NCBI GenBank assembly: GCA_965644295.1
Contig: CBFFRP010000274.1
Coordinates: 1 to 16,196 of the forward strand
Reading direction: 5' to 3'
Source of the DNA: Paraphysomonas bandaiensis
Taxonomy: Eukaryota; Protista; Chrysophyceae
DNA length: 16,196 bases
Below, one piece after another: positions 1-16,196 of this stretch; position 1 is the first letter of the stretch; each line of letters opens with the position of its first letter. The position numbers and the translations under genes were made by a program. The notes beneath the pieces were generated by a model. It ran no database searches. It saw only the letters and a list, made by a program, of their open reading frames with translations, and was not told the origin of the DNA.

Positions 1-1210
1 CAGGAGTACACCTCCCGCGCAAACTCGCTCAAGCGGATGGCAGTGCATCCAAAGACAAACTCAGCTCAAATCTACGCCAAAGAATACTCAACACGGCACT
101 GACATGGGACAAATCTTTCTGCATAGGGAGGAACCGGGCCAAAACCAAACAGGGGCTTGACCTGACCAAAGCCGCATGCTCTGACTGCGGGTTTCGACTA
201 GATTCCCTAAAACATATGTGCCTCGACTGCACACATGAATCCATCACCCAAATAAGGGAAACTGCATTTCAATCGCATAAAAATGTGCTCCACGAAATAC
301 AGAGAACTCAGACCTTACCCAACTGGATCACATCTGCACTACGGAGACTCTCCAGCAGAGCCTGGAATCCCTCCATCCCACAGGTCGAGAGATACTGGAC
401 TGGAACCATCACAGCAGCCCAACTGGAAACGGTCTTCGGAGATGCCATACACAACCACCTGACGGCACACAGTCTACGGAACCTAGAAACAGCGGTTATT
501 AATCTCCTGCAACCGCTTTACACTGCAGCGAAGCTTATGTTTCAGGATCGCGGTTGTCGCTATATCACCATGTCCAAAAGGCCGCCCAGGCTACTCCCGA
601 GACCCCGTCCGAAACGCAGTCAGTCAAGACAACGCCCGAGAGTCCTTCGCTTACTAGGGGTCCAACGACGACCCCCCACAGCGTATCCGACTCCAGACAC
701 ACGTGCACACCTCACAGGTCCTACCCGACAGAGCACTGGACTGCCCAGACCTCCACAACGCCGACGGCTTCGACAACTCTATATACACCCGCGGCCCCAC
801 AGGAGCACAGTAACACAGACTACAAACCCTACCCCTCCTCCCAACAATCCCCACCACCCTCAACCCACACATCTGGAACTAGGTGCACTCAAGACCCTAA
901 TTCAGAACGCTGAGCCCCCTCCAAAACCAATGGAGACCCATCCCAAAGGGAGACCCCCAGATCAATAGCGCCGGTGAGTCCCAGGACACACGATCATGGC
1001 GAGCCTCATAACACACACTAAGAACGGAAGTGGTTGCACCTTGGTGCTTGCGGCGACGCACAAGCAGCTTCTGTAGCGTTAAATAGTAGGATAAAAGAGT
1101 TTGTATTGATTAGTTACGGGTAGTGGTCTAACTAGTATGACTAGCATTCTTCTAGCCACTAATTGATGCAAGGTCTCAACGCCTATTGCTAAATAATCAG
1201 ACATTCACTA
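1..1210 (+). mobile_element. 3' end of a non-LTR retrotransposon (LINE): ORF2 C-terminus plus ~240-nt 3' UTR; 5' part lies outside the window
   Basis: Frame is open from position 3 to the stop at 968 and contains a CX2CX8HX4C knuckle. The region is C/A-rich and intronless. The 3' UTR block 1021-1210 recurs at 8491, 9331 and 13201. Confidence 0.8.
3..968 (+). CDS. Non-LTR retrotransposon ORF2 C-terminal fragment (zf-RVT-type CCHC knuckle followed by a Pro/Arg/Thr-rich tail), 5'-partial
   Basis: Extending ORF 216..968 upstream in frame gives no stop to the window edge. 177-230 encodes CSDCGFRLDSLKHMCLDC, the cysteine motif typical downstream of RT in APE-type LINE ORF2 proteins. The protein ends GRPPDQ*. 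Confidence 0.75.
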   Translation, partial: GVHLPRKLAQADGSASKDKLSSNLRQRILNTALTWDKSFCIGRNRAKTKQGLDLTKAACSDCGFRLDSLKHMCLDCTHESITQIRETAFQSHKNVLHEIQRTQTLPNWITSALRRLSSRAWNPSIPQVERYWTGTITAAQLETVFGDAIHNHLTAHSLRNLETAVINLLQPLYTAAKLMFQDRGCRYITMSKRPPRLLPRPRPKRSQSRQRPRVLRLLGVQRRPPTAYPTPDTRAHLTGPTRQSTGLPRPPQRRRLRQLYIHPRPHRSTVTQTTNPTPPPNNPHHPQPTHLELGALKTLIQNAEPPPKPMETHPKGRPPDQ

Positions 1211-2019
1211 TACCTCTATCCATATATCAGTCTGGTCACAACTGACTCAGTATTAAAGTGTAAAAGAAGATACATTCAGCATTTCATTGCATATCTAGTT
1301 CAAATGCAACATACTCACACAAATGCGTATGTATGTATTATGTATGATCAAACTGGATTCGATATAATACATTATACATTCTATATACGATATACGATGA
1401 TAAGAATAATGTAGAAAACGTAATGTACAACTGCATGCCTAGGTAATTCGGCAACATACATCTATTAGCATGGATATAAACCCCGGAATTCTCCAGCCTT
1501 ACTCATCTTAAAGTTCCATTAATATTGTTAATATTTGTCTCCAAAATTACTCCTTTTTCTCTTTGTTTTTGTTCAAATTGATTCTTTATCAGTAGCATGC
1601 GGCAAGCGCATCTTATATCACTGCCATAATATTCAGTAGATTTATAAGTTCAATAATTATAATTGTACCATTGTAAATATAATATGTACAAGTATTAGCA
1701 TATACAATAGATAGATCATAGGAATAAATAACCAGATAGCTGGTTATTACAAAATCAATCGCCAAACGACCAAAAATTCTTATTGAATTCAGATTTATAT
1801 GCGCCTTACTGCAAATAATGGAGTATGAACTGGTAACACTCAAACTATTTCACTTATACATGTAGAAGAACCGATAACACCCTATGTCAATCACTCAACG
1901 ATGCGAACTTTACTGTCGTAGAACAACAGTTGCAACGAAGTCATATTTACACAGTCCACTTTCGCCAATTAGCTGGGCCTTTTAGTTTTTTTTTCGACGA
2001 GCTCCGTATAAGGCGCCCC

Positions 2020-2514
2020 TTAGTTGCTTTCTTTTTGCAATGCTTTACTCTTGTCTTCTTGCGCTATTATATACCGTCGGACTTCACTCTCGATCCCAGA
2101 GTGTCTATAGTAGTCGTCCGCCCGTTGCAGCAGGCGGATGATTTTTCCATCAATGAGATGGAAACTAGCGAGAACTTTTAAACCACATTTCTCGCCTGAA
2201 ATCGGGATAATACCCCCCCACTTTGCACCCTCCTGACAAATGTAATCAGTTTCCCACTCAGCGAGCACCACGGACTTCCCGTCCAATTTTTCTGAACATA
2301 AAGCAATTGACACTATCCGGAGTCTGCTCGTAGACACCAGGGACTCCCAGGCAGGCAAAAAAGCATATAGATATGAAGGCTTATTGTGTTGCCCATTGTC
2401 GTCGTCGAAAACGAAATCATCGTGGAGAAGGCTATCCACAGACGAATAATCAACATTCGACAGCCTCGAGTAGCAGCCTTCCAGGAACGATGTTACTGTA
2501 CTAATCTCAGACAT
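2020..2514 (-). CDS. NTF2-like / SnoaL-like (ester cyclase-type) protein, 164 aa, intronless
   Basis: Motifs 'VDSLLHDDFVF', 'GIIPISGEK' and 'FHLIDGKII' follow the SnoaL/NTF2 pattern (L..D.v; G.p.tG+; F.l.DGKI). Recognised by eye only. Confidence 0.65.
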   Translation of the reverse strand: MSEISTVTSFLEGCYSRLSNVDYSSVDSLLHDDFVFDDDNGQHNKPSYLYAFLPAWESLVSTSRLRIVSIALCSEKLDGKSVVLAEWETDYICQEGAKWGGIIPISGEKCGLKVLASFHLIDGKIIRLLQRADDYYRHSGIESEVRRYIIAQEDKSKALQKESN

Positions 2515-3029
2515 AATAGTGCGCTAATACCACAAGTACTTATGTATGCTAAGGAAATCCACAACCACAATGAAAGTCCTCGATTCTAGAGCATATTATA
2601 TTTCTCACCTAGAAAGAAACCGAGAGGCGATTGATGTTAGTGCTTCGAACGGAATGGGTGGGATTTGTGCGCCTCTCATAGATATGGAGTATACTCTGAC
2701 GATCATAATATATGACGCAGCAATACAGGAATACGGTAGAAATTTGGATCCAATAGAAATGTCATGTTTTTATAGATAGCCATGTTTATTATTGCACAGA
2801 AATCTAGAAATTAGGAGAAGGACATCAAAATGTTAGGGAAGACAGAACAAATATACATACAAAAAACTAGTAGGAATTCCTAGATCATGATTTTAGCTCA
2901 TTCAGGATTAGATTTTATGTGAACACTGGAAATGAACTACACATCTTTCCTGAGTGCCACAAGCCTTCGCCTTCGCCATAAGCAATGTGCTGATATTAAC
3001 GTATAAAGTTTATCTTTCCATCGAAAACT

Positions 3030-6000
3030 ATGTCGTTAAAGAAATATAAGAAGGTGAAGTATCTCGGCAAAGGATCATACGGTGCAGCTATATTGGTGTG
3101 CCTCAAATCAGACCCCAAAGAAAACTTTGTCATCAAGGAAATTGTTATCGGTCATCTGAAGGACTCAGAGCAACAATCAGCGAAGAATGAAGTTGAAGTA
3201 CTTCGCCAAATGCATCATTCCAATATCGCCATGTATGTGGAAAGTTTTGTGGAGAATTCTAAGTTATATATTGTCATGGAATACGCGAACGGAGGGGACT
3301 TGACTAGAGCAGTGCAAAGACGAAAGAAAAGTGGCCGACGATGGAATGAGGATGAAGTCATGAGAATATTTGTGCAGATTTGTTTAGCCCTGAAACATGT
3401 GCACGATCAAAACATATTACACCGTGATCTGAAGTCGCAAAATATTTTCCTTACAAATAGAGGTATAGTGAAATTGGGCGATTTTGGCATTGCTAAAATA
3501 CTGGATGCCTCTGGCGATGAAGCACGCACCCAGATCGGCACGCCATATTATTTGTCTCCTGAGATTTGTGAATCGAAACCCTATGGACGAAGTTCAGACA
3601 TGTGGTCGTTAGGTGTGTCTTACCCGATATGATAGTTGATTGATGGATTTGTTTGTATTTCTATTTATTGTTCGATTTTATTGCCACACTTTTACCTTGT
3701 TTTATTGCATCAGCTCATGGTATTGTTTCATTCTCGAGTTCTAACTCATTTCGTGCTAGGGGTGGTGTTCTACGAGCTGTTGGTGCTGGACCTTCCATTC
3801 ACTGCACATAGCTTACCAGCCTTAGTTGTCAAGATTTGTTCTGCAGAGCCTAGTTGGAATGTTATTGAGGACAACTACAGCCCCGAGATATTGACCCTGG
3901 TAGAATACTTACACTCCTAATGTGTCATTGTACAATCCACTTAACCACCGCGTTGTACTTCTGTGTGTTGCAGGCTCGACAGATGATTATGAAAAACCCT
4001 TTTAAACGACCAACAGTAAAAGACATTGTACGGACAGAGTTTGTAACTGGTCACATCAGCCGGCTTCTGTCTCACACGATTCGCAAGGGTACCGGTGGGG
4101 CTGAGAGCGCTGTGACAAGCACATGTCCTACTGACTCCGAAGAGCGACAGCTCATGGAACAGCTGGATAAAGAGAAACCACATCCAGTAGGTCAGGTGCG
4201 AGAATCATATACATGCATGTGTCAGAATGACAATATTTATGGCTAGATGCACCGTGAGCGTCAAGCCAAGCGAGAAGAGGAAAGGGAAAAGCTCAGGAAG
4301 TTTCGGTGAGTGGCAGTACTGCAACTGCGTTATGAGTAGCTGAGAAATAGGTGTACCAGTGAGCATAGACACAAGGAAAGGGAGGAGTCCGAAGTTGAGG
4401 GAAACAACATAAAAATGGACGATAAGGGGGACGTACGTCAACGAATGAAACACCATAAGGAACATCATCAAACCGACGACGCACAGAAAATATATATAGT
4501 GAGTGGATATAAACCCAGCGTGACGTCATCTCATGACCTACTTATCTACGGCCCAATGAATTAGTCCTTGTTTACAGGCAAATCAGGTCAGAGCTAGAGA
4601 AAGCAGACTGAATGCTGAGCGCGATATACCTAACAAGCATAGCAAGCGTTGTCATACCAATAACCCTTCTGGTCGTGACGTAGCTCAAAGAGTAAACGAT
4701 TTTTCGCAGTTTGAGGGTGCTGCTAGAAGGTCTGTTGTTCCAGTATTACGTTACCCTCCCAGTTTATGTGTACCATTGTTATATTATACAGGGAATTTTT
4801 TGCTAATCGAGCCGCCGCACAGCTAATTAAGGCACGGGTTGAGCAATATGAAAGAGTGGGAGGAAGTTATGCCGAAGGTGGACACATTGGGGGACAGCAG
4901 GAAGTGCGGAGAAATATGATTACGCGCCCAGATACCTCTGTTACCGGTATGTTGCTGTCCTTGAGAATTATTTGAACTAGTGTTGATTTAGTGTTTGGTA
5001 GGTGAGGATAGAATCGCTCAAGTTAAAGCACAACGAGAAAGAGCACGCGAACAAGAGAACTCCGAGAGACAGAGACAAGTAAAGTCCTATGTGCTAATAG
5101 TGCTAATTTTTAAATAGTGTGCATGTAATCTATATCTAGCTCCAAGTTGCGTATGAAGAAACAAGGTCTGCAAAGGCCAGGCTGACAGAGCAGCGGAAGA
5201 AGCAAGAAGAGCGCACGAAGCTACAAGACGATGCTATTGGCGATCGGTTGCGATATGACGATATCTCCGGCAGGTATGAACTAGAGTTTGTAAATATTCG
5301 TTTGACTATTTTATAGGTCACCGAGATTGGGAGATGATTCCGATCAAGGTGGGAGTCACTACGAGCGTCAGCGTCGCAGAGAAAAACAGAGAGAAGAAGA
5401 AACTCGGCAGCGGGAAGAGGTCAGTTGACGATAGCAATATCCAGTGGTTACTGTACTGTTGATTTAGGCATTCCGTGTGGTGGCTGCTGAAAACCGTGCT
5501 CAGCGTAGGGCGATGCGAAAAGAAGGACGAGTTGAGGCAGTAGCCTTTAGTATAGATTTAAATGAAGTAAACAGCGTACCCGCTGACAGTGCTTCTTTGT
5601 TTGAAAAGGTTCCAGTTCCCAAAATTTCCCGAGCGTCAGTAGATACGAATGACAGGGACATATCAGATAAAAAAGATGGCACCAATATCAACAATGTGAA
5701 TTCGGCGAGAGCTCAGAGAACTGTAAGCGATGGTTGCTCTGCCCTTGATGGTGATGGTATTGCTGTGAACTGGTGTGAAGACGAACCAGAAGTCAGAAAG
5801 CAGCACTCCAAGGACTCTGGTGGTCGAAAGCCTCGTAAAGGGTGGGGAGCGCCAATAGATCCCTTTCACTTTCCTGCACCAGACCCAACAATTGAAGCCG
5901 ACGATTCTTATATATGGAAGGGTAACTATGGTGCGCCTCAGAAAGTACAAGAAAGCTCTACGCTTATAAGAGCATATGGTGGTGAGAATCAGCTTGCGAT

Positions 6001-6884
6001 TGCATATCCTTTCTGAGGTCGTTTCTGTGAAGAGTCATTGGCTCGAGAGGTTGCTGAAGATGAAGAGATTGTGCTGAATGCCATTGAAGCTAAACATGGG
6101 AGAGAGCACGAAGCAAGGACACAGGCGAAAAAGGTCAAATACTTGTGTACATTGTGATTTTGTATTTATTGTGTACTCCTTAAAGAAATTTCGAGTATTG
6201 AGGGCGCAGCAGCAAGAGTGTATAAAGAGTTTTAAAAGAGGTTTGTGAAAGTACAATCCATAGTTTTAAGCGACTATCCCTGACGTGTATACAGTGGCCT
6301 CACCATCCACTGCACAAGATGTAAAAGGCGATATCCTACAGGTAGAGGCTGTAGAGAACAAACTGGGTTCAGTCGGTTACATGGAGCCTCGTGTGGTTTC
6401 CTCCTCTCGACCAAACTTGAATGAAATTCTCAGTAAGGTTGCTGCGGCCAACGAGGAGGTAAAGAAAGCGGTCGGAGTTAGCCGTAGCAAGATTGTTAGT
6501 ACGAAGGATGAAACGGATAGAGAGTCTGCACAGGTTACGAATTCTGACAAAGTGGGCGATAGTGAGATACTTTTTTACTCGGATAATGACGACGACGGCA
6601 GCAAAGACAAGGCCGATGATTTAGTAAAAACATTGGACACGTGGTTTACTCGCCACGAAAATAGGAAAAGTGTGGATGAATGCCTTTCTGAGTCGAAGCT
6701 ATCTCGTGAACGACGTGAGGCCGCAAGAAATGCTCTAAGAGAGGAAAGCAGCTGGCTTTTTAACGGCTACGATGATAACTGTGAGGATGAGGCAGGGGTT
6801 GAGAATTCAGAAGATGGAGAAATGGCCGATTTGCAGTGTATGCTAGCTGATGTGTTGATACTAAACGATGACTATAAGATGTAA
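3030..6884 (+). CDS. NEK: NIMA-related Ser/Thr kinase (NEK1-like), 14 exons, ~1010 aa, N-terminal kinase domain and charged coiled-coil tail
   Basis: Kinase motifs LGKGSYG, VIKEI, YIVMEYANGGDL, HRDLKSQNIFL, KLGDFGIAK and IGTPYYLSPEIC are NEK-family typical. Manual GT-AG splicing gives exons 3030-3612, 3760-3899, 3974-4195, 4247-4305, 4351-4498, 4578-4729, 4792-4946, 5002-5078, 5140-5273, 5317-5419, 5468-5981, 6033-6133, 6186-6240, 6295-6884. These total 3033 nt in one open frame ending TAA. Junctions after exon 3 are less certain. Confidence 0.9.
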
Positions 6885-7695
6885 TTTAGTCCAGTATTTG
6901 TATTGTACATGTATGTGATAATTGTAGTTGTAATATGGTATCGGTGCTAGATTCCTACGTTGTAGGCGATACATTTATTCTCTGATTGTGCATTTTATTA
7001 AAATATCACGGCTTTTCCTTATCCAGTGAAGATTTATTCGTTTCTCTATAGTCAATATCACATGGAAGTGAAACCCGAGATATTGCAAGTTGCGACAGTG
7101 TGTGCAGATTCCTTGGGCAACACTCAGAAATGAAAGGTAACGCCACATGATCTAACTAGGCCATATTAGCTATTACACTTTGCCTTTCAGTCTTATATGT
7201 ACTGTGGTGCTTTGTGACAGATCAAGGCCAGATTTGCCTTCTTATTAACCATAATGTGGTCCATCCCAAGTGGTTATTGTCTTAATAATTACAAAAGAAG
7301 CAGAATATTTCTAAATCTTCAGAACATCTTTCGTGCAGCTATCTTACAAATAATTTATACCATCATAAAGGTACAAATCCATATTACTCTACTTGAAGAA
7401 CAGCTAGCATGAGAAAACAAAAATAAGTATAAATTCAAAATATCTGATTATTAGCAGTAAATAAACATGACGATATCAAACGTAGTAGTATTTAAGACAC
7501 ACAACTAAAGTATTTCTTCACTATTTAGGGCTTTGTAAGATATATGTTGCCATGTATCCACGAGAAAAATACGTGCAAAGTCTTGAGAAGGGGACTTTTG
7601 CTTCAAGTCATTTACTTCATCTCTTTATACCTGGCAACACATGTCTACTTTCATTAATTGCTTATAGTGGAACTCCCGTGTGGGGCTTATCAACA

Positions 7696-7781
7696 CCCTC
7701 AACAAAGTCGAATTTGCATTTTTTCGTGGTGTTCTGGGGGATAAGTACTGGATATACTTTTCCGGGAATCTAACGTGGGCC
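7696..7781 (+). ncRNA. Decayed copy of the candidate HDV-like ribozyme
   Basis: Homologous to 9036-9122. It keeps TTTTCGT-GGT-GTTCTGGGGG, a P4 stem (CTGGA/TCCGG) and CTAAC-GTGGG, but the P2/P3 5' strands carry C>T changes. Confidence 0.35.
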
Positions 7782-8640
7782 ACATATTCTGCCCACTAAT
7801 AGCCTAATGCTTGCGTGATACAAAGGAAACCAATTCAAGTGTTACTTGTGTAGAGATCTTTGGGCCCTGACAAATAAACAGGAATTCGGGAATGGGCCCA
7901 CCTCAACAAAGGCATCCGCGGTATTGGGCTGCCTACAGAAGTCGAGGTAATACCAAAACCTGGTTTTTGATGTAAAACCTGATGAAATATTTGATGATGG
8001 TCGGAAAAGGGGTTAAATATGCACAATAACTAACTATGAAGATATTAACAGTGTGAAAAGTATTGTTTATAATATTTTTGACTACTTTCTTGCATATTAC
8101 TTCAGTTTTACAGCAATAAAAGTCACCGACTACACACATATGTTATACAGTTCAAGCTATTCCGTCAAGCATAATATAAAGCTATTCTTTGTACGATACC
8201 CCACTACGATATTCTGAAGTCAATCATCCGGGCTGTTCACCTTTAGGACTCGTCAGCAGATGTCAGATATATATAAACATTCTGCTTGTTGCTCAGAGCG
8301 ACATTTGCTTTGGGTGATAAAGAAAAAATAATTAAGAAACAGCAATAGTGGCAGAGCCTAGAACAGAGTAGGTGGATCAAGGCGCGCTCTCATCTGAGAA
8401 TGTTTTGACTGGAAAACGTCGACGCGTAGTAGTGGGGTGTCGGTCAAAAAACGCTTTGTATGCTTATGACTGAAAATGCTTAAACAGTATAGAGCAGAAG
8501 TGGCAGCACCTTGGTGTTTGTGGTGACATACAAGAAGTTTCCCTAGGGTTAAATAGTAGGAATATTATTAGTATTAAGTACCAGATAGATTTCTGTTTAG
8601 TTTTAACACTTGCATGCCCATATTGCTGAACAATAATCAG
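7696..8640 (+). mobile_element. Non-autonomous LINE-related element, copy B (diverged, with two extra internal segments)
   Basis: 7696-7943 aligns to 9036-9300, 8214-8251 aligns to 9293-9330, and 8491-8560 matches 9331-9400 at 59/70. It ends TATTGCTGAACAATAATCAG, like the other copies. No TSD found. Confidence 0.8.
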
Positions 8641-9024
8641 CGTGTTAAGTTTTGCTGTTTGAGAGCTATTATAAGCTGTAGTTCTAAGGTATTTGAAGTA
8701 TGACCGTTACTTGAAGAATACAGTATTGATTAACAGTATTACATACATGAACTATGGATATTAAAGGAATAATAGCAGTGGTACTGAAATAGTATATATT
8801 CACTGTATAAGATCGAGTCTATATATCCAAGATCGTATGAAAATGCTTAGTTGTTGAGATAACACGAATTTGACAAACATAACAATTAATAATAAAAGTG
8901 AGATTGATCATAAATTGAGTGTATATTACGTTCAGTTAATTAAGTTTAAACCATCCAAACATCAAAATTTGATAGAGCGAACCTCTTTGAAGAGAGAATT
9001 TACTTACAACTCGATAAGAAACAG

Positions 9025-9035
9025 AGGATTTCTTT
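9025..9035 (+). repeat. Target-site duplication, left copy (AGGATTTCTTT)
   Basis: Identical 11-mer at 9513-9523. It directly abuts the position where homology with copy B begins (9036 vs 7696). Confidence 0.85.
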
Positions 9036-9122
9036 CCCTCAACAAAGTCGGACTCGCACCTTTTCGTGGTGTTCTGGGGGATAAGTAACGGAGAGATTCT
9101 TTCTGGGAAACTAACGTGAGCC
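9036..9122 (+). ncRNA. Candidate HDV-like (delta) self-cleaving ribozyme at the element 5' end
   Basis: Elements occur in nested double-pseudoknot order: P1 CCCTCAAC (9036-43)/GTTCTGGG (9071-78, 6 of 8 pairs); P2 CTCGC (9053-57)/GTGAG (9116-20); P3 ACC/GGT around a 7-nt L3 TTTTCGT (9061-67); GG (9079-80); P4 CGGAGAG/CTTTCTG (9089-9105); J4/2 CTAAC with putative catalytic C9111. Atypical points: no G at +1, and L3 lacks the usual CC. Confidence 0.5.
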
Positions 9123-9512
9123 GCAAACATAATAGTCAGCAGATATTCTTCTGTCCACTCATAACCGAATGCTTGTGTGGTACAAGGGACACAAATAAGT
9201 GTCACTTGTGTAGACGTCTTTGGGCCCTGACGAATAAACAGGCATCCGGGACAGGGCCCACCTGAAGGGTAACCGGGGTATTGGGCTGCCTGCTGAAGTC
9301 AAGCATCCGGGATGTTCACCCTAAGAACTCAGAGCGGAAGTGGTCGCACCTTGGTGCTTGCGGCGACACACAAGCAGCTTCCGTAGCGTTAAATAGTAGG
9401 ATAAAGAAAGTGTGTACTGATTAGTCACAGGTAGAGGTCTAACTAGTTTGTCTAGCTACTAAGTTGGTGCAGGTTTTTAACGCCTATTGCTAATAATAAG
9501 ACTTTCAATGTA
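9036..9512 (+). mobile_element. Non-autonomous LINE-related element (SINE-like/bipartite), copy C, 477 bp, apparently full-length
   Basis: Flanked by an 11-bp TSD. The 3' block 9331-9400 matches LINE 3' UTR 1021-1090 at 66/70, and similarity continues to the terminus. The 5' block is shared with copies at 7696 and 13048. No coding capacity, TIR or LTR seen. Confidence 0.9.
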
Positions 9513-9523
9513 AGGATTTCTTT
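9513..9523 (+). repeat. Target-site duplication, right copy (AGGATTTCTTT)
   Basis: Identical to 9025-9035 and follows the conserved 3' terminus (...AATAAGACTTTCAATGTA). Confidence 0.85.
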
Positions 9524-10149
9524 GAATGCTGGATGTACATGCTTTCTAGTCAAATGTAAGAGATAGTTCTATTTTCTAATGAGTTAGGAGATGTTTGGTG
9601 TTTGTAGATGACCCCTTATTTTGATAACCATCATGCTTCGGGCAATAAAGGTGAGAGTTTGTTACTATACAGATCTGCAAAAAGACTTTGGTGGATGAGC
9701 GATTTCTTAGGTGGACTTAGAATAGCCAACCCAATATACTTTTTCCTTTATTAATTTTTTTAAAAACATAGTTGTGGTTAGTGTATGTTTAGCTACCGAT
9801 AGATATATGATATATCTAAACGGTATATGAACATACGATAAATGATAAACAAATGTAAATTGAGAAATGTGTGATATTTAATAGTCACAGCTTTATCTCA
9901 AAATACCTTTTGCTGTATCACAACTTACAACTGGAGAGTATTCATTTACAGCAATACATAATATAGCACGTCATCGACTTTCAACTATGTAAAAGATTAG
10001 AAATATAAGCAAATCAAAGGTATAAATGGTGGAAAGTATTGACACCAAACTATGCTCAAAAGAATATGCAATGCGACACAAAAATCAAACGCTATAGCAT
10101 CCAGATCAGAATCAGTCCAGGTTCTATCCTGTGCGCATTTAAAATACAG

Positions 10150-11491
10150 TAAAAATTAGGCTACAGTCTAAGGGCATCGCGATGTACCAAAGAAATAAAG
10201 ATATCCTTTTGGGGTGTAGATTCATTCAATATTTCAGCAAGTACATCTGCATCTTCAAAGCATAGGCTGTAATCCACTTCCGGAGTTCGTATGAGTACAT
10301 CCTTCTATGACCAGAAGCTCTTCAGGGGGATTAATATCCTATAGAAAAAAGTATAATGTGTGACTAGTAGAAAAAAAGTGACCAGTACGCAGAAAAGGCT
10401 AATAGGTCTCGCAGTTCTATCCATTAAGATTGGAGGTGCCTGAATACGGCGGTACTAAATCATTTCTCGTATTCACCAGGATTCGCCATTGTTGCGCTAA
10501 ACTATCATTGTTGATACATAAGCCGCCGCGTACTCATCAGATAGAAATGTTTTACATGCAGTAGAATCAGAACTGTCTAGCTGTGTTGTCAATCAGCTCG
10601 GATGATATTCGCTATCCATTTTCATCATATGAGCCTAAATCCATTGTGAATTTTATTCCACGATTTTCAAAAGTCGAGGCATATCGCTGCATACCAACTC
10701 GCTTCAGTCCTTCGTGTATTGTTACAACTGTAACTTGCCGAGAACGAGCAGACTTTGCCCCACTTTAAGAAAATAACCCTGAAGGGTTGTCAGTGAAGTT
10801 CATTCGATAGAAGCTTACCTTCGAATTCGGAGGCTAACCCTTCTTCTCCAGGATAAAACTGCAAAAACAACTATAGCGTCCACATCCTGTTGAGTGGAGC
10901 ATCCCTCAAATACTCTGCTTAGGAGTTAGCTATAGTCATTATTAAATCCTTCATACTCCAATAGGCTATAGAAAAGCGTAAACATGTCACAACATACGTA
11001 GAGAAAGAGGTGTATATTATTGTTCCAGAGACAAACTTCGTGCGTTAAATCAGCATAGATATATCGAGGATGTGCGAGCCTTTCACACCACATAACAGCA
11101 TTACAATTGAGGTTCGTAATATGAGTAGTAATGGTTGACGATACACAGAGAAAGACCGCGAACTGAACGAAACAACTTGACAAACTCATTATCTTGATCA
11201 AGTCTTGAATACAAGGGTTGCTATATTGCGCAATGAGCCCAGTGATCTCACATCTATAAATAACAGAACATATACGTGGAAATCTAACGAGGCAGGAGAC
11301 AAAGACATTTTGAATCCTGAAAATACAAAATACTGAATCTGTGTGGCTGTTTCAAGATACTAAAACCTGGACTTTTCCAATAAATACTGGGTTTTGTTCT
11401 ACAAGACTATCGGTGTAGGAAACTTGATTTGTTGCTTGCCAGCTGCTGGATGTACTCTCTTATACTCTGTATCTGCCATCATCAACACGAC
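10150..11491 (-). pseudogene. Decayed, intron-containing BCS1-like AAA+ ATPase gene with a SAM-like segment (boundaries approximate)
   Basis: Minus-strand fragments lie between GT-AG sites: (G)RVD at 11481-11491, 'SLSPASL', 'YLRDAPLN' with 'DVDAI' in a shifted frame, 'LFLQFYPGEEGLASEF' (10823-10870, resembling the BCS1 lid MF.rFYPG), and 'LKRVGMQRYASTFENRGIKFTMDL' (10636-10707, SAM-like). They are interrupted by in-frame TAG/TAA, frameshifts and deletions. Confidence 0.5.
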
Positions 11492-11549
11492 CTACACATA
11501 TCATTCATAATTCATATACATATAGACATCACCACCCAGTGGTGATATC

Positions 11550-12767
11550 ATGATATCCAGCCAGTATTTTGCAGGAAATCAATTGAATAGATCCATCGGT
11601 GATCGTAAGAATGAATCCTTTCTACTTGATGTACTCAGCGAATCCTCCACAAGAGTCCTGGTGGTAACCTCTGATAAACGTGGAGTTAAAACAGTACTGT
11701 GTGAATGCTCGAATACATACTGTCTTCACTTCATGCCCGCCTCATATGCCGTGAAGTTGACGAACTTCACAAACCTCACGTGTGTAGTTGATTTATATCA
11801 GGTCGTTTTGCTTGGATTTAACGAGGAGCACTCCTGCTGGAATGTTGCTATCGACATACCTGATGCAAGTGACAAATTGAAACTACTTTATCAAGATTTT
11901 GTGTCTAATTACAGCTTTGAAAGTGGGCGCTCTTTGCTAACAAAAATAAAAGGTTCTGATCTGGCCGTCGCTGGTCAAGCGGTTTCCATGTGCACATGGC
12001 ACGATTCCAACTTGTATAGCGGCAGAAATGGCCTTCCCACTATGTCTATCGAATGCGGAATGAAAAGAAAAGTTGCCGGAAGTGATTTGACCGGTCATAG
12101 TGCACAGAAGCTGTATCCTCGCATTGACCCAGTTGCTATTGTGGCTGTACTGTCTCCAGACTTGCAGCACATACTTCTTGGTCACATGAACAGAAGCCCC
12201 ACCAACTTCTACTCCTGTTTGTCAGGGTTCGTAGAACCCTGTGAGTCTGTTCAAGAAGCTGTATGTAGGGAAGTATTCGAAGAATCAGGTGTCTTTGTCG
12301 ACCAATCATCCGTGCGTATTGTTGATTCTCAGCCGTGGCCCATTGGTCGCGGGGGTGGTTGTGAGCTGATGATTGGATGCATTGCCATTGCCTCAACCAC
12401 TGAAATTAATATTGGGGATTGTGAAGTTTGTAGCGTGAAATGGTTTTCCGTTGCTGAAGCTTACGGTATGTTAGTACAATCTCGGAGCACTGGTGAAATT
12501 ATCACTAACAAAGTAACCCCCTCACATCCTTACATACCGGGAGTGTATGCTATTGCGCACCATTTGGTGGGACTTTTTGTATCCATCCACTCGCGTGAAG
12601 TCGTTGCAACAAGTCCATATGGGGATATTATTTCTGACCTACGGAGGATAAATGACACTGTTTGTGCTGACAATGAAAACACGTTATCTTTTCCGCGAAA
12701 ACTGCCTACTTTGCTGTTTGCAATTCCCGCATTGATGTTTTTTGCATGCCGTTTATTTTGTCAATAG
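11550..12767 (+). CDS. Nudix hydrolase of the NADH pyrophosphatase family (NudC/NPY1/NUDT12-13/plant NUDX19-like), 405 aa, intronless
   Basis: Nudix box GFVEPCESVQEAVCREVFEESGV fits GX5EX7REUXEEXGU. Also present: the family-diagnostic SQPWP, 'YPRIDPVAI', N-terminal 'YFAGNQLNR' and a hydrophobic C-terminal tail. Confidence 0.9.
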   Translation: MISSQYFAGNQLNRSIGDRKNESFLLDVLSESSTRVLVVTSDKRGVKTVLCECSNTYCLHFMPASYAVKLTNFTNLTCVVDLYQVVLLGFNEEHSCWNVAIDIPDASDKLKLLYQDFVSNYSFESGRSLLTKIKGSDLAVAGQAVSMCTWHDSNLYSGRNGLPTMSIECGMKRKVAGSDLTGHSAQKLYPRIDPVAIVAVLSPDLQHILLGHMNRSPTNFYSCLSGFVEPCESVQEAVCREVFEESGVFVDQSSVRIVDSQPWPIGRGGGCELMIGCIAIASTTEINIGDCEVCSVKWFSVAEAYGMLVQSRSTGEIITNKVTPSHPYIPGVYAIAHHLVGLFVSIHSREVVATSPYGDIISDLRRINDTVCADNENTLSFPRKLPTLLFAIPALMFFACRLFCQ

Positions 12768-13047
12768 TTCGAAATCACACTCTATTTTCTTTTTAATTAT
12801 ATCGAGCTTGATTTATGGTCTGTATATATTCTTTATTTCCTATCCTCTTAGTATACATGTGTTTGCAGAGGTAACCATGTCTAGCAGTCAGCTATCAGGG
12901 CTGCGTAGTAATTAATTGTCAATTATAATTGCAATTATTACTTTCTGTTCCACTTAATTGATACCAAACTGCATATACTCAAGTAGCTATACATTAGCTA
13001 CCAACATAGCTTGCTCGCCGGTAATTTCGTTCCAGAGGCGACGATTC

Positions 13048-13363
13048 ATGCTTGTGCGATACAAGGGGCACAAATAAAAAGTGTCACTTGCGTAGACGTA
13101 TTTTTGGGCCTTGACTAATAAACAGGCATCCGGGAATGAGCCCACCTAATTGCAAGGGTATCAGGGGTATTGGGCTGCCTACTGAAGCATCCTGGTACAG
13201 AGAGCAAAAGTGGTTGCACCTTGGTGCTTGCGGTGATGCACATGCAGCTTTCGTAGCATTAAATAGTAGGATATCAGAGTTAAGCACTAGTTAGTTAAAC
13301 TGTTTTGCTAGATTAGTTTTGACTCTAAACGCCTATTGCTACGTAGTAATCAGACTTTCACTA
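13048..13363 (+). mobile_element. Non-autonomous LINE-related element, copy D (5'-truncated, lacks the ribozyme-like head)
   Basis: 13048-13192 aligns to 9169-9308, and 13201-13270 matches 9331-9400 at 61/70. It ends AACGCCTATTGCTA...TAATCAGACTTTCACTA, as the LINE does at 1178-1210. Confidence 0.85.
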
Positions 13364-13819: not shown

Positions 13820-14698
13820 CGCACCAAGCTCAATGTCTCAGTTGAGACCGTGGTTGTGTTACATCAGCGGGTCCAGGCTCAGATTGTCTTCTCCTCCCCA
13901 CGCAGGGCTGTATTTTGTATCACACCACACTGCCGACAAACACCTTGTCTTACCATGTTGTACATGCTTCCCGTTCGATAACGTGGCTTTGCAACCATTC
14001 TCTTCACTAACGCCGTCAGTTAAACTAAGTGCCTGCACCACTGCAGCGCTGTCAGTTCCTATTGGACATCTCCCTTGTAGACGTATCTGTCTCACACACC
14101 GTTCTCTACGGTTACACCACTCATCGCATGGCTCGTGCGGGTAGGCACTCGAAAACGGTTCACTTGTTCATTCGCTAACACCCATGTTTTCCATCGGCCC
14201 CGCTACCTTGGAAGACAGGACCATTTCTTGACGACCGCACAAACCAACCCAGCATGGTTAGTCTGTGCGTCTATGCACCAAGCAGAGCACCCCCTCACCC
14301 TGTTTGCCTATCATCCCCACAGCCCATACATCTCATTGGATGGACACAGTATTCCGCATACGGTATACCCGACTACTGTACTACTGTGTCCGTAGAGAAA
14401 GTATGCGGTACTCGGTCTGGTTGTTAACGGACGTTGCTAATCGTATACGGACGGAATACCCCCGTTGCCTTTTTTGCACAGTCTACGCTACAGGTAGTCG
14501 AAAGCAAGGTTCTCTTTGTAGTTGCTACAGAACTCCTTTTAGTAAGAGGAAATTATGCTTCTAGTCTACAGCCGTACACAAATTACTGCATACTATAACA
14601 CCATACACTCCTATGTGCTCTATGCGTATCTTATACAGTCACTTCAAGTACTAAACTGAAAAGAACATTTCCTATCTACTGCGCTGTATTCTTCTTCG
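13820..14698 (-). repeat. Possible 3' LTR / non-coding tail of the copia element (limits uncertain)
   Basis: It follows a purine-rich ACAGGGGCG just after the RNase H end on the minus strand and is visibly more GC-rich than the AT-rich flank below ~13820. No second LTR is in the window, and no clear TG...CA ends were seen. Confidence 0.3.
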
Positions 14699-16196
14699 CG
14701 CCCCTGTGGCATGTGTATCCGCTTCCTGCGATACAACATGTCAGATTCACCCTGAAGGGGCTTCGTTAACACATCGGCCAACATCTTCCCAGTTGGTAAG
14801 TACTCCAGCTTGATGTAACCATTATCATGCTGTTCTTTGACCAAAGCTTGTCTCACGCGCAGGTATTTAGACCTGTATTTGCCTCCTCCCTTCGTCACGA
14901 GGCTGATGTTCGAAATATTGTCCTGGAACACTACAGGTGGGTCCAGTTTGTAACCCTGCGCACATATGAACTCATGTATCTTCATCGCACAGGAAAACAT
15001 ATCCGATAGGCCAACCAACTCTGATTCGGTGGAGTCCTTAGTCACGATACGCTGCTTCGTGGACCTACATAACACAGTTGCTTCCCCGACCTGAACCACC
15101 ACACCGGTATGACCTTTTCCGTCTGTGTGCAAAGCAAATGACGCATCAATGAAAACTCTTACACTCATTTCTTCCCCTATTCTTGGGTGCAGGACTTTGT
15201 CACTGGTCTGTGCGACGTACTTCAACACACGCTCCACCTTCTGTTGATCCTCGCGCGTCGGACTCTTCACTTTGGTGGCAAGGTAAGCCACGCTCAACAG
15301 AATATCAGGTCTCACTCTTGTCGCCAGATATAGTAGCTTGGCCACCACGGAATGAAAACTAGCTGTCTCCTTTCTGCTCAATCTCTGAGTTTCGCTCTGG
15401 GAGAACAATGAGGATGTCGCCGGAGACGCTGCTCTCTGCCTGCGGCCGCTGCCTCTTCCAGTACCCCGTCTAGGTAGGCCTTCATCGATATCACTGCCTT
15501 TCCGTCGGCTACACTCACATGCATACCTATGTACGACATGTCGCTGTCATCGCAGTACTTTACCTCACCATACTGTTTTTTTAACTGTTCCACCAGCCAC
15601 ACTGTGTCACTCTTGTCCTGCGACATTACTAACAAGTCGTCCACGTGTAGGGTTACCGTGCACTGGTTGCCATTGACCGTTCTGTTGAACACGCATTGGT
15701 CCACTGTGTTAGCCACAAATCCGATTGACTCCAGGTAAGCTCTTATAGTGTTGTACCAGAGCTTTGCGCTTTGAACACATCCATACAATGCCTTATCCAG
15801 GCGTACTAGGAGTCTCCCCCGCTCATCAATGTAAGGTTGAATTGAGGGGTCAAGCTTCTTCATAATCGTCGCCAGCATGGGCTCCAGCTCCATGGTCACT
15901 TCCTCGCCGGTCATCTCCGCATTCAGGTACGCGCCGCCAATGTCCACAGTTGATATGTGTCTCCCTTCTTTCGCCGCTATATAGCTAAACAAGTGAATAC
16001 TGATTGCAATGCTACCGTAGGTGATGACGTGTCGGTGAAAGTTTTCGATCTTGCTCGTACACCCCTTTGTCACTCCCTCCATCATCGTCATCATCATCGT
16101 GATCGTCAACCAGTTCTGGAATTTCTGTTGTGTCTTCCAGCTCATTTTTATCGGGCTCTCTCGGTGCTTCGGTCATTTCGTTCTCGCCAGTCTCGG
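14644..16196 (-). mobile_element. Ty1/copia LTR retrotransposon pol remnant (RT + RNase H), inactivated; continues beyond the window
   Basis: RT motifs DIGGAYLNA, LDKALYG, DQCVF, LHVDDL and RPDI. RNase H motifs DASFALH, STESELVG, QDN and ADVLTKPLQG. Frameshifts occur near 16038, 15980 and 15435, and the RT N-terminus is missing. Confidence 0.95.

Follow-up and report, generated by a model that had tools for sequence, protein, structure and literature searches.

The first 16,196 bases of contig C274 (CBFFRP010000274.1) in the 62.5-Mb, 669-contig genome assembly of Paraphysomonas bandaiensis, hereafter the window, very probably contain the 3′ end of a young long interspersed nuclear element (LINE) of the apurinic/apyrimidinic endonuclease (APE) type, together with three copies of a non-coding retroposon of about 480 nt, one intact, one interrupted and one 5′-truncated. 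With the same confidence we regard this short element as a chimera, in which the LINE contributes the last ~180 nt, its structured 3′ tail without poly(A), and the first ~295 nt, referred to as the head, are unrelated to the LINE. The evidence consists of the homology of the tails, target site duplications (TSDs), 5′ truncation, the copy number, covariation within the folded tail and a LINE sequence in which the head is absent. An earlier note on this DNA had taken the short element for a cut-down LINE; its origin is corrected here to a foreign head joined to a LINE tail. The result is a clean, abundant and recently active pair of a LINE and a non-autonomous partner in a little-studied marine stramenopile. 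In what follows, numbered C and L labels denote genome contigs and comparison contigs, L077 and L078 being public metagenome contigs.

Three short elements end in the 3′ tail of a LINE

The contig starts inside the LINE, and the short elements, named copies B, C and D, lie downstream on the same strand. The features concerned are as follows.

1–968 (+): C-terminal 322 codons of LINE open reading frame 2 (ORF2); frame open, translated without a stop
969–1016 (+): stretch of the LINE 3′ untranslated region (3′ UTR) not common to the short elements; BLAST similarity starts only at 1017/1021
1017–1210 (+): LINE 3′ tail common to the short elements; junction RNA at ~1024–1074; ends ...CAGACATTCACTA, no poly(A)
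7696–7946 (+): copy B, head and body; older sister subfamily, 76% identical to copy C 1–268, 83% over the first 95 nt
~7940–8154 (+): unrelated dispersed repeat interrupting copy B; 92% identical to L057:2890–3106
8214–8330 (+): copy B, part of the body located ahead of the tail in sister subfamilies; 72–74% identical to the pre-tail regions of L006, L013, L053 and L058
8487–8642 (+): copy B, decayed tail without the terminal ~10 nt; found as a repeat match
8643–8870, end approximate (+): repeat X, adjoining the copy B tail and outside the family; 5′ end TGTTGAGTTTTGCTG
9025–9035 (+): copy C, 5′ TSD AGGATTTCTTT, read from the sequence
9036–9124 (+): copy C, conserved head module of ~89 nt; starts CCCTCA, contains GCACC-N4-CGTGGTG and can be drawn as a P1–P4 fold of the hepatitis delta virus (HDV)-like/Pr77 type
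9125–9330 (+): copy C, body; no match to the LINE, Rfam or tRNA
9331–9512 (+): copy C, LINE-derived tail; 82% identical to 1017–1207, ends ...GACTTTCAATGTA
9513–9523 (+): copy C, 3′ TSD, read from the sequence
13048–13363 (+): copy D, sister subfamily, 5′-truncated; tail at 13197–13363, ends ...CAGACTTTCACTA

The earlier note had reported that the ~190-nt end of the LINE 3′ UTR recurs at the end of three short elements, and both a repeat finder and BLAST bore this out (1017–1210 in the LINE). The repeat finder returned a 79-nt family at 1017, 8487, 9327 and 13197, with 73–94% identity to the LINE copy, and a second block common to 7696/7837, 9036/9197 and 13081. By BLAST, element positions 292–472 of copy C match the LINE 3′ UTR at 1017–1207 with 82% identity, and positions 134–368 match 13048–13273. 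The same program aligned 7696–7946 with 9036–9303 (copy C positions 1–268) at 76% identity, and 13048–13187 with 9169–9308. As the note had also held, the three elements possess a separate 5′ block of ~295 nt that is absent from the visible part of the LINE: neither program found it in window positions 1–1016.

Copy C is flanked by an exact 11-bp TSD, AGGATTTCTTT, at 9025–9035 and 9513–9523. Copy D starts at about element position 134 and is 5′-truncated, because a full-length member of its subfamily exists at L028:2231–2699; a clean TSD was sought around copy D and not found. Copy B is not a simple copy, being an older member of a sister subfamily that is interrupted by an unrelated repeat. 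The only ORF in the short elements is a spurious antisense one of 89 aa, in agreement with their description as non-coding.

The short element forms a large family in the genome

At least 40 full-length copies with 90–94% identity to copy C were found in the genome. When the 31-nt core of the head was searched with up to three mismatches, 1,066 genome matches were obtained (545 forward and 521 reverse) versus none for the reversed control. Such recurrence greatly exceeds what chance would give. The family thus numbers about a thousand or more copies, and for genome annotation it represents ~0.5 Mb or more of the 62.5 Mb.

All 31 full copies examined start with CCCTCAAC and end in ...GACTTTCAATATA without poly(A), and recognisable TSDs of ~10–15 bp flank 23 of them. 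The hallmarks of target-primed reverse transcription (TPRT) that had been read from copies C and D therefore hold for the family: TSDs of variable length, 5′ truncation (copy D and others) and no poly(A). The element also has further properties of a tail-sharing, LINE-dependent retroposon, namely a 3′ end homologous over ~180 nt to a LINE 3′ UTR of the same genome, a short (~480 nt) non-coding body and a high copy number. No paper describing this family was found in a literature search.

The full-length LINE has a defined 5′ end without the head

The full LINE was found by a word search with a LINE ORF, which led to a protein cluster including members of 3,114 and 3,111 aa, encoded on L077 (13,017 nt) and L078 (10,346 nt). 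The full LINE sequence was taken from these metagenome contigs, and LINE copies beyond those sampled were used as coordinates and counts only. The ORF2 part in the window has copies of 100% identity on C182 and C320 and more than 35 others of 97–99% identity, and in alignment it corresponds to the end of the 3,114-aa ORF2 on L077 and L078. This ORF2 (protein P0015, L077:3176–12520) contains, according to Pfam, a SET domain (PF00856, aa 1185–1289, 1.3e-8), an APE domain (PF03372, aa 1355–1592) and a reverse transcriptase (RT) domain (PF00078, aa 2049–2342); an RNase H domain was not found in it by Pfam. The 846-aa ORF upstream of ORF2 has no Pfam match. With APE and RT in one ORF and with 5′-truncated copies, the LINE belongs to the APE-type non-LTR (long terminal repeat) retrotransposons. 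The copies on L061–L064 are truncated at differing points on the 5′ side, and the 3′ ends of more than 30 copies read ...CAGACATTCACTA(CT).

A genome search with L077:1–3400, evaluated by coordinates, placed the LINE 5′ end at L077:419/420. At least 11 genome copies, ~100% identical, start exactly at L077:419. The same start is seen in another size class, with at least 20 copies that are 81% identical over 420–1053 (634 nt). Since more than 30 genome copies of two size classes share one start, the 5′ end of this LINE is well defined. By coordinates the two classes measure 12.33 kb (C152:220244–232576) and 9.34 kb (C440:3947–13288); the 9.34-kb class lacks ~3 kb, which take in the greater part of the upstream 846-aa ORF and the beginning of ORF2. 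Its copies are 97–100% identical (Kimura two-parameter distance, K2P, 0.015); the LINE is autonomous and recently active.

The earlier note had proposed that the short element consists of the two ends, 5′ and 3′, of the LINE itself, like the RIME/ingi and NARTc/L1Tc pairs or the R2-derived short internally deleted elements (SIDEs). The LINE 5′ end was not visible in the window, and its comparison with 9036–9330 was run on the metagenome-derived LINE, where no match was obtained. BLAST of the short element against L077 and L078 found only the tail. In Smith-Waterman alignments the first 100 nt of the head scored at the shuffle mean against the LINE 5′ end (z = 0.01), the best match of the 296-nt head in L077:419–1100 was 16/18 nt, a score reached by 4 of 300 shuffles, and alignments of the head to the LINE 5′ end and to the whole 12.3-kb LINE gave z = 0–3, which is not significant. 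A covariance model of the head had no match in L075–L078 at E ≤ 1 and recovered every known head in the 314 kb searched. Because the LINE has a defined 5′ end without similarity to the head, the RIME/NARTc/SIDE model is refuted for the LINE family studied. Of the adverse findings that the note had named, an unrelated LINE 5′ end was indeed obtained; variable TSDs of 10–15 bp are present in 23 of 31 copies.

The SET/PR-type methyltransferase-like domain lies just upstream of APE in ORF2. In a 41%-identical LINE relative (L076:2433–3836) a SET gene is found directly upstream of an APE-RT gene. This contig (GCA_002726235.1, PBSN01000010.1), which encodes a eukaryotic-type SET and APE-RT LINE, is filed as a 'Nitrospiraceae bacterium' metagenome-assembled genome and is probably a mis-binned eukaryotic contig. 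A literature search returned no paper on SET-bearing LINEs. For the SET-APE-RT part, the ESM Atlas gave only generic APE+RT clusters at 0.83, below the 0.9 line and to be taken as a lead only, and the PDB, searched by sequence, offered no more than weak matches of the RT to LINE-1 ORF2p. With the APE-containing fragment, a related-locus search of genome, viral and metagenome contigs gave nothing, and a word search gave only a 41%-identical relative.

The shared tail folds into a conserved three-way junction

Over its first ~55 nt the tail adopts a three-way junction fold composed of an outer stem, a GCAC-CUUG-GUGC hairpin and a GNRA-capped hairpin. Among 45 distinct tails from the genome, 94.6% of the cells are paired, and 10 cells are changed on both sides as compared to 4.1 ± 1.7 in shuffles (1/500). 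The junction also occurs in a LINE relative that is only 45% identical in protein, on the TARA marine metagenome contigs L079 and L080, where it directly follows the stop codon. On these contigs (L079:3703–3763 and L080:3315–3380) it starts ~10 nt past the stop, and in the window LINE ~55 nt past it. This 45%-identical relative clusters with a Paraphysomonas transcript, which together with the NUDIX gene of the window (see below) places the host among the marine ochrophyte stramenopiles.

In this relative both partners are altered in four pairs of the outer stem and in the pair that closes the GNRA hairpin, whose loop reads GCAA in place of GCGA and is still GNRA. An alignment of eight sequences including L080 has 6 pairs changed on both sides versus 1.2 ± 1.0 in shuffles (0/500), and slid controls give at most 2. 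Since compensatory changes persist in a relative of 45% identity, the junction is an old and selected feature of this LINE clade. It is most likely the handle by which the RT recognises its RNA. A tail fold that covaries across such distant LINE relatives makes the recognition signal of the clade directly testable.

The head module resembles Pr77 of trypanosomes

Between subfamilies, no part of the 5′ block is better conserved than its first ~89 nt: copies B and C are 83% identical over the first 95 nt and 76% overall. Conservation falls right past ...GAGCCGC (~nt 89–90), where the P2 stem of an HDV-like fold would end. The head starts with CCCTCA, has GCACC at 21–25 and CGTG at 30–33, and continues with GTGTTCTGGGGG. 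The Pr77 module of L1Tc starts with CCCTGG, has CCACC at 16–20 and an essential CGTG at +25 to +28, and continues with GTGCCAGGG (PMC3185411, PMC4748587); its sequence was pieced together from primers and positions in these two papers.

It is plausible, if somewhat short of probable, that the head is an active HDV-like ribozyme (Pr77/L1TcRz type) that would free the element RNA from read-through host transcripts at +1. All 31 copies begin exactly at the predicted cut site, which is consistent with cleavage but no proof of it. The consensus can form P1 (6 bp), P2 (7 bp with one bulge), P3 (4 bp with the 7-nt loop L3 UUUUCGU) and P4 (7 bp), and the RNAfold centroid recovers P1, P3 and P4. In this fold 93% of the cells are paired against 34–57% with slid partners, a control that is biased as the fold was drawn from the consensus. 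The signature common with L1Tc Pr77, a CCCT start and (C/G)CACC-N4-CGTGGTG followed by the 3′ strand of P1, and the drop in conservation between subfamilies at the predicted end of P2 also argue for a ribozyme. On the other side, the 41 sequences contain no pair with both partners altered, and their covariation score (0.067) lies below that of shuffles (0.078). Covariation in the head cannot be improved on within the 314 kb searched, because the covariance model found no additional divergent heads there. P2 needs a bulge, P1.1 is a single pair, and the folding energy of the head is no better than that of shuffles. No HDV-type Rfam model matches 120 nt of the element even at E ≤ 10. To our knowledge Rfam holds no L1Tc-specific model.

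A role as an internal RNA polymerase II (pol II) promoter of the Pr77/downstream promoter element (DPE) type, or as another internal promoter, that would start transcription at +1 with or without ribozyme activity is rather unlikely, yet far from negligible. The CGTG at +30 to +33 compares with the DPE CGTG at +25 to +28 in L1Tc Pr77 and with +28 to +32 in insect LINE promoters (PMC4748587), and G31, T32, G34 and T35 are invariant in 41 copies. This resemblance is at the level of the motif only, and the sigma-70 and pol III (RNA polymerase III) consensus tools are inapplicable in this protist. For Pr77, both ribozyme and promoter activity have been reported (PMC3185411, PMC4035085, PMC4748587), and on our analysis the two roles would not be mutually exclusive for the head either.

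We put forward only tentatively, as less likely than not, that the ~89-nt head may be a working Pr77-type module (ribozyme, promoter or both) outside trypanosomatids, on a retroposon whose partner LINE is without it. If true, a Pr77-type module could be acquired independently of a LINE and combined with a borrowed LINE tail, and the Pr77-like design would be either much older or convergent. A design thought peculiar to trypanosomatids would then extend to another group, should the head prove to be a Pr77-type ribozyme or promoter.

Proposed mobilisation in trans and the choice of partner LINE

In the mechanism that we propose, the LINE RT would recognise its own RNA through the tail, that is, the three-way junction just past the stop and the terminal motif AGAC(A/T)TTCA(C/A)TA, and would then copy this RNA into a nicked target by TPRT. 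The RNA of the short element, bearing the same tail, would be copied in trans. The invariant 5′ end CCCTCAAC would be set by the ~89-nt head module, either through HDV-like/Pr77-type self-cleavage or through a Pr77-like internal promoter. Both the mobilisation of the short element by the LINE and the role of the head module are what we infer from sequence comparison.

Several observations weigh against this account. The sampled short-element copies (K2P 0.052) are ~3.5 times more diverged than the sampled LINE copies (0.015). The short-element tails match the L077-type LINE tail at 92% over ~180 nt but are only 86% like the window- or L078-type tail that dominates the genome (copy C versus the window, 82%). 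In the genome, the LINE junction with the window-type marker gives 200 matches versus 7 with the short-element/L077-type marker, and the L077-type tail was found in none of the 40 best genome LINE 3′ ends. In folding stability, tail and head are both on a par with shuffles (z ~0). Finally, the hallmark of a classical SINE (short interspersed nuclear element), a pol III promoter derived from tRNA, 5S or 7SL RNA, was found by neither Rfam nor ARAGORN, so that the short element is not a SINE in the strict sense.

The earlier note had named the ORF2 at the left edge as the driver of the family in trans. The sharing of the tail with the LINE stands, whereas the case for this particular ORF2 is weakened by the 92% versus 86% tail match; given the tail identities, the marker counts and the K2P divergence, it is a plausible driver but not the best-matched one. 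Because the short-element tail is closer to the variant on one metagenome contig, the burst may have been driven by a lineage other than the current LINE; it probably used an older or now rare tail variant. L077 and L078 are 99% identical over 10.2 kb, yet their tail bodies differ (L077:12564–12772 versus L078:10034–10226). LINE tails thus appear to be exchangeable modules, which suggests tail swapping between LINE lineages or between LINE and short element. The L077 tail has a short internal duplication near its end.

The same pair of contigs could be explained by a reversed or mixed transfer, in which template switching would have passed the tail body from the short element to some LINE lineages (L077 type). 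Under this explanation the L077 tail, differing from that of its 99%-identical counterpart, would be closer to the short element as it is, and the LINE junction with a short-element-type marker would be rare in the genome as it is (7 versus 200). We consider such a transfer improbable: the junction past the stop in the 45%-identical relative indicates that the tail is ancestrally a LINE feature, and the support comes from a single metagenome contig.

Other origins of the short element

That the short element is a classical pol III SINE, whose head would come from a small RNA gene too diverged to be recognised, is quite improbable. Its size of ~480 nt, its copy number and its LINE-derived tail fit SINEs; however, ARAGORN finds no tRNA, Rfam gives no tRNA, 5S, 7SL or snRNA match at E ≤ 10, and A and B boxes were not seen by eye. 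That the short element is an internally deleted derivative of the window LINE, carrying the LINE 5′ and 3′ ends, is hardly tenable, for although the element is bipartite with a fixed 5′ end, and its head resembles a module common to the LINE and its derivatives in trypanosomes (PMC4748587, PMC4035085), only its 3′ end is that of the LINE, and neither the LINE 5′ end set by more than 30 genome copies nor the remaining 12.3 kb has similarity to the head.

Repeat X and neighbouring genes

Repeat X is an abundant separate repeat with the fixed 5′ end TGTTGAGTTTTGCTG and 681 first-look candidates. It was located at window 8643–~8870, at L077:5–~418, at L061 4557–4663 on the reverse strand, at L047:2709–2927 and on L066–L074. 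It adjoins the 3′ ends of copy B and of one LINE copy, on L047. On L077 it immediately precedes the LINE, and on L061 it hosts a truncated LINE insertion. Repeat X was considered as a part of the LINE or of the short element and rejected, as it possesses a fixed 5′ end of its own, flanked by unrelated sequences, and as LINE copies begin at L077:419 rather than inside it. Near the LINE copy on L061, the reverse strand carries a microsatellite of ~1.1 kb at 1881–2991 (unit TGTATGTA).

Three further genes were recognised in the window.

3030–4246 (+): protein-kinase gene, read as several ORF pieces (Pkinase, 3e-53)
11550–12767 (+): intact NUDIX/NADH pyrophosphatase gene, 99% identical to an MMETSP transcript; next-closest relatives are ochrophyte algae (40–53% identity)
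14644–16145 (−): Copia-type reverse transcriptase at the right edge (RVT_2, 1e-20)

Comparison with known systems

LINE/SINE pairs of the stringent type with a common 3′ tail include eel UnaL2/UnaSINE1, the tortoise CR1 with its pol III SINE, L2/MIR and RTE/Bov-tA. As in these pairs, the short element in P. bandaiensis carries the LINE 3′ UTR with a structured poly(A)-less tail, shows TSDs and 5′ truncations, and outnumbers the LINE in copies. Unlike theirs, its head is not derived from tRNA, 5S or 7SL RNA and is without recognisable pol III boxes; the LINE is unusually large (9.3–12.3 kb) with SET in ORF2, and the host is a stramenopile.

The R2-derived SIDEs of Drosophila are internal deletions of R2 that insert site-specifically in rDNA. 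They have in common with the present element that a short non-coding element uses the LINE 3′ end for TPRT and bears a ribozyme-type 5′ end, which is putative here. In the present element, by contrast, the head is foreign to the LINE, and the copies are scattered and flanked by TSDs of variable length. Retrozymes, and the schistosome Sm-alpha SINEs with their hammerhead ribozymes, are non-autonomous retroelements that bear a small self-cleaving ribozyme. The P. bandaiensis element likewise combines a non-autonomous retroelement with a module resembling a small self-cleaving ribozyme (again putative), but of a different class and at a different position in the element.

In trypanosomes Pr77 belongs to the LINE, from which the short elements derive by truncation (PMC3185411, PMC4035085, PMC4748587). 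This is where the present pair departs from NARTc/L1Tc and RIME/ingi, as the LINE has no match to the head, the head fold is without covariation and its activity is only predicted. The likeness lies in a non-coding partner with a fixed 5′ end, a CCCT start, a CACC-N4-CGTGGTG core with CGTG near +25 to +33, and a fold that can be drawn as HDV-like. Overall, the system is an ordinary partnership of the LINE/SINE type through a structured tail, in a new host and with an unusual head that is foreign to the LINE.

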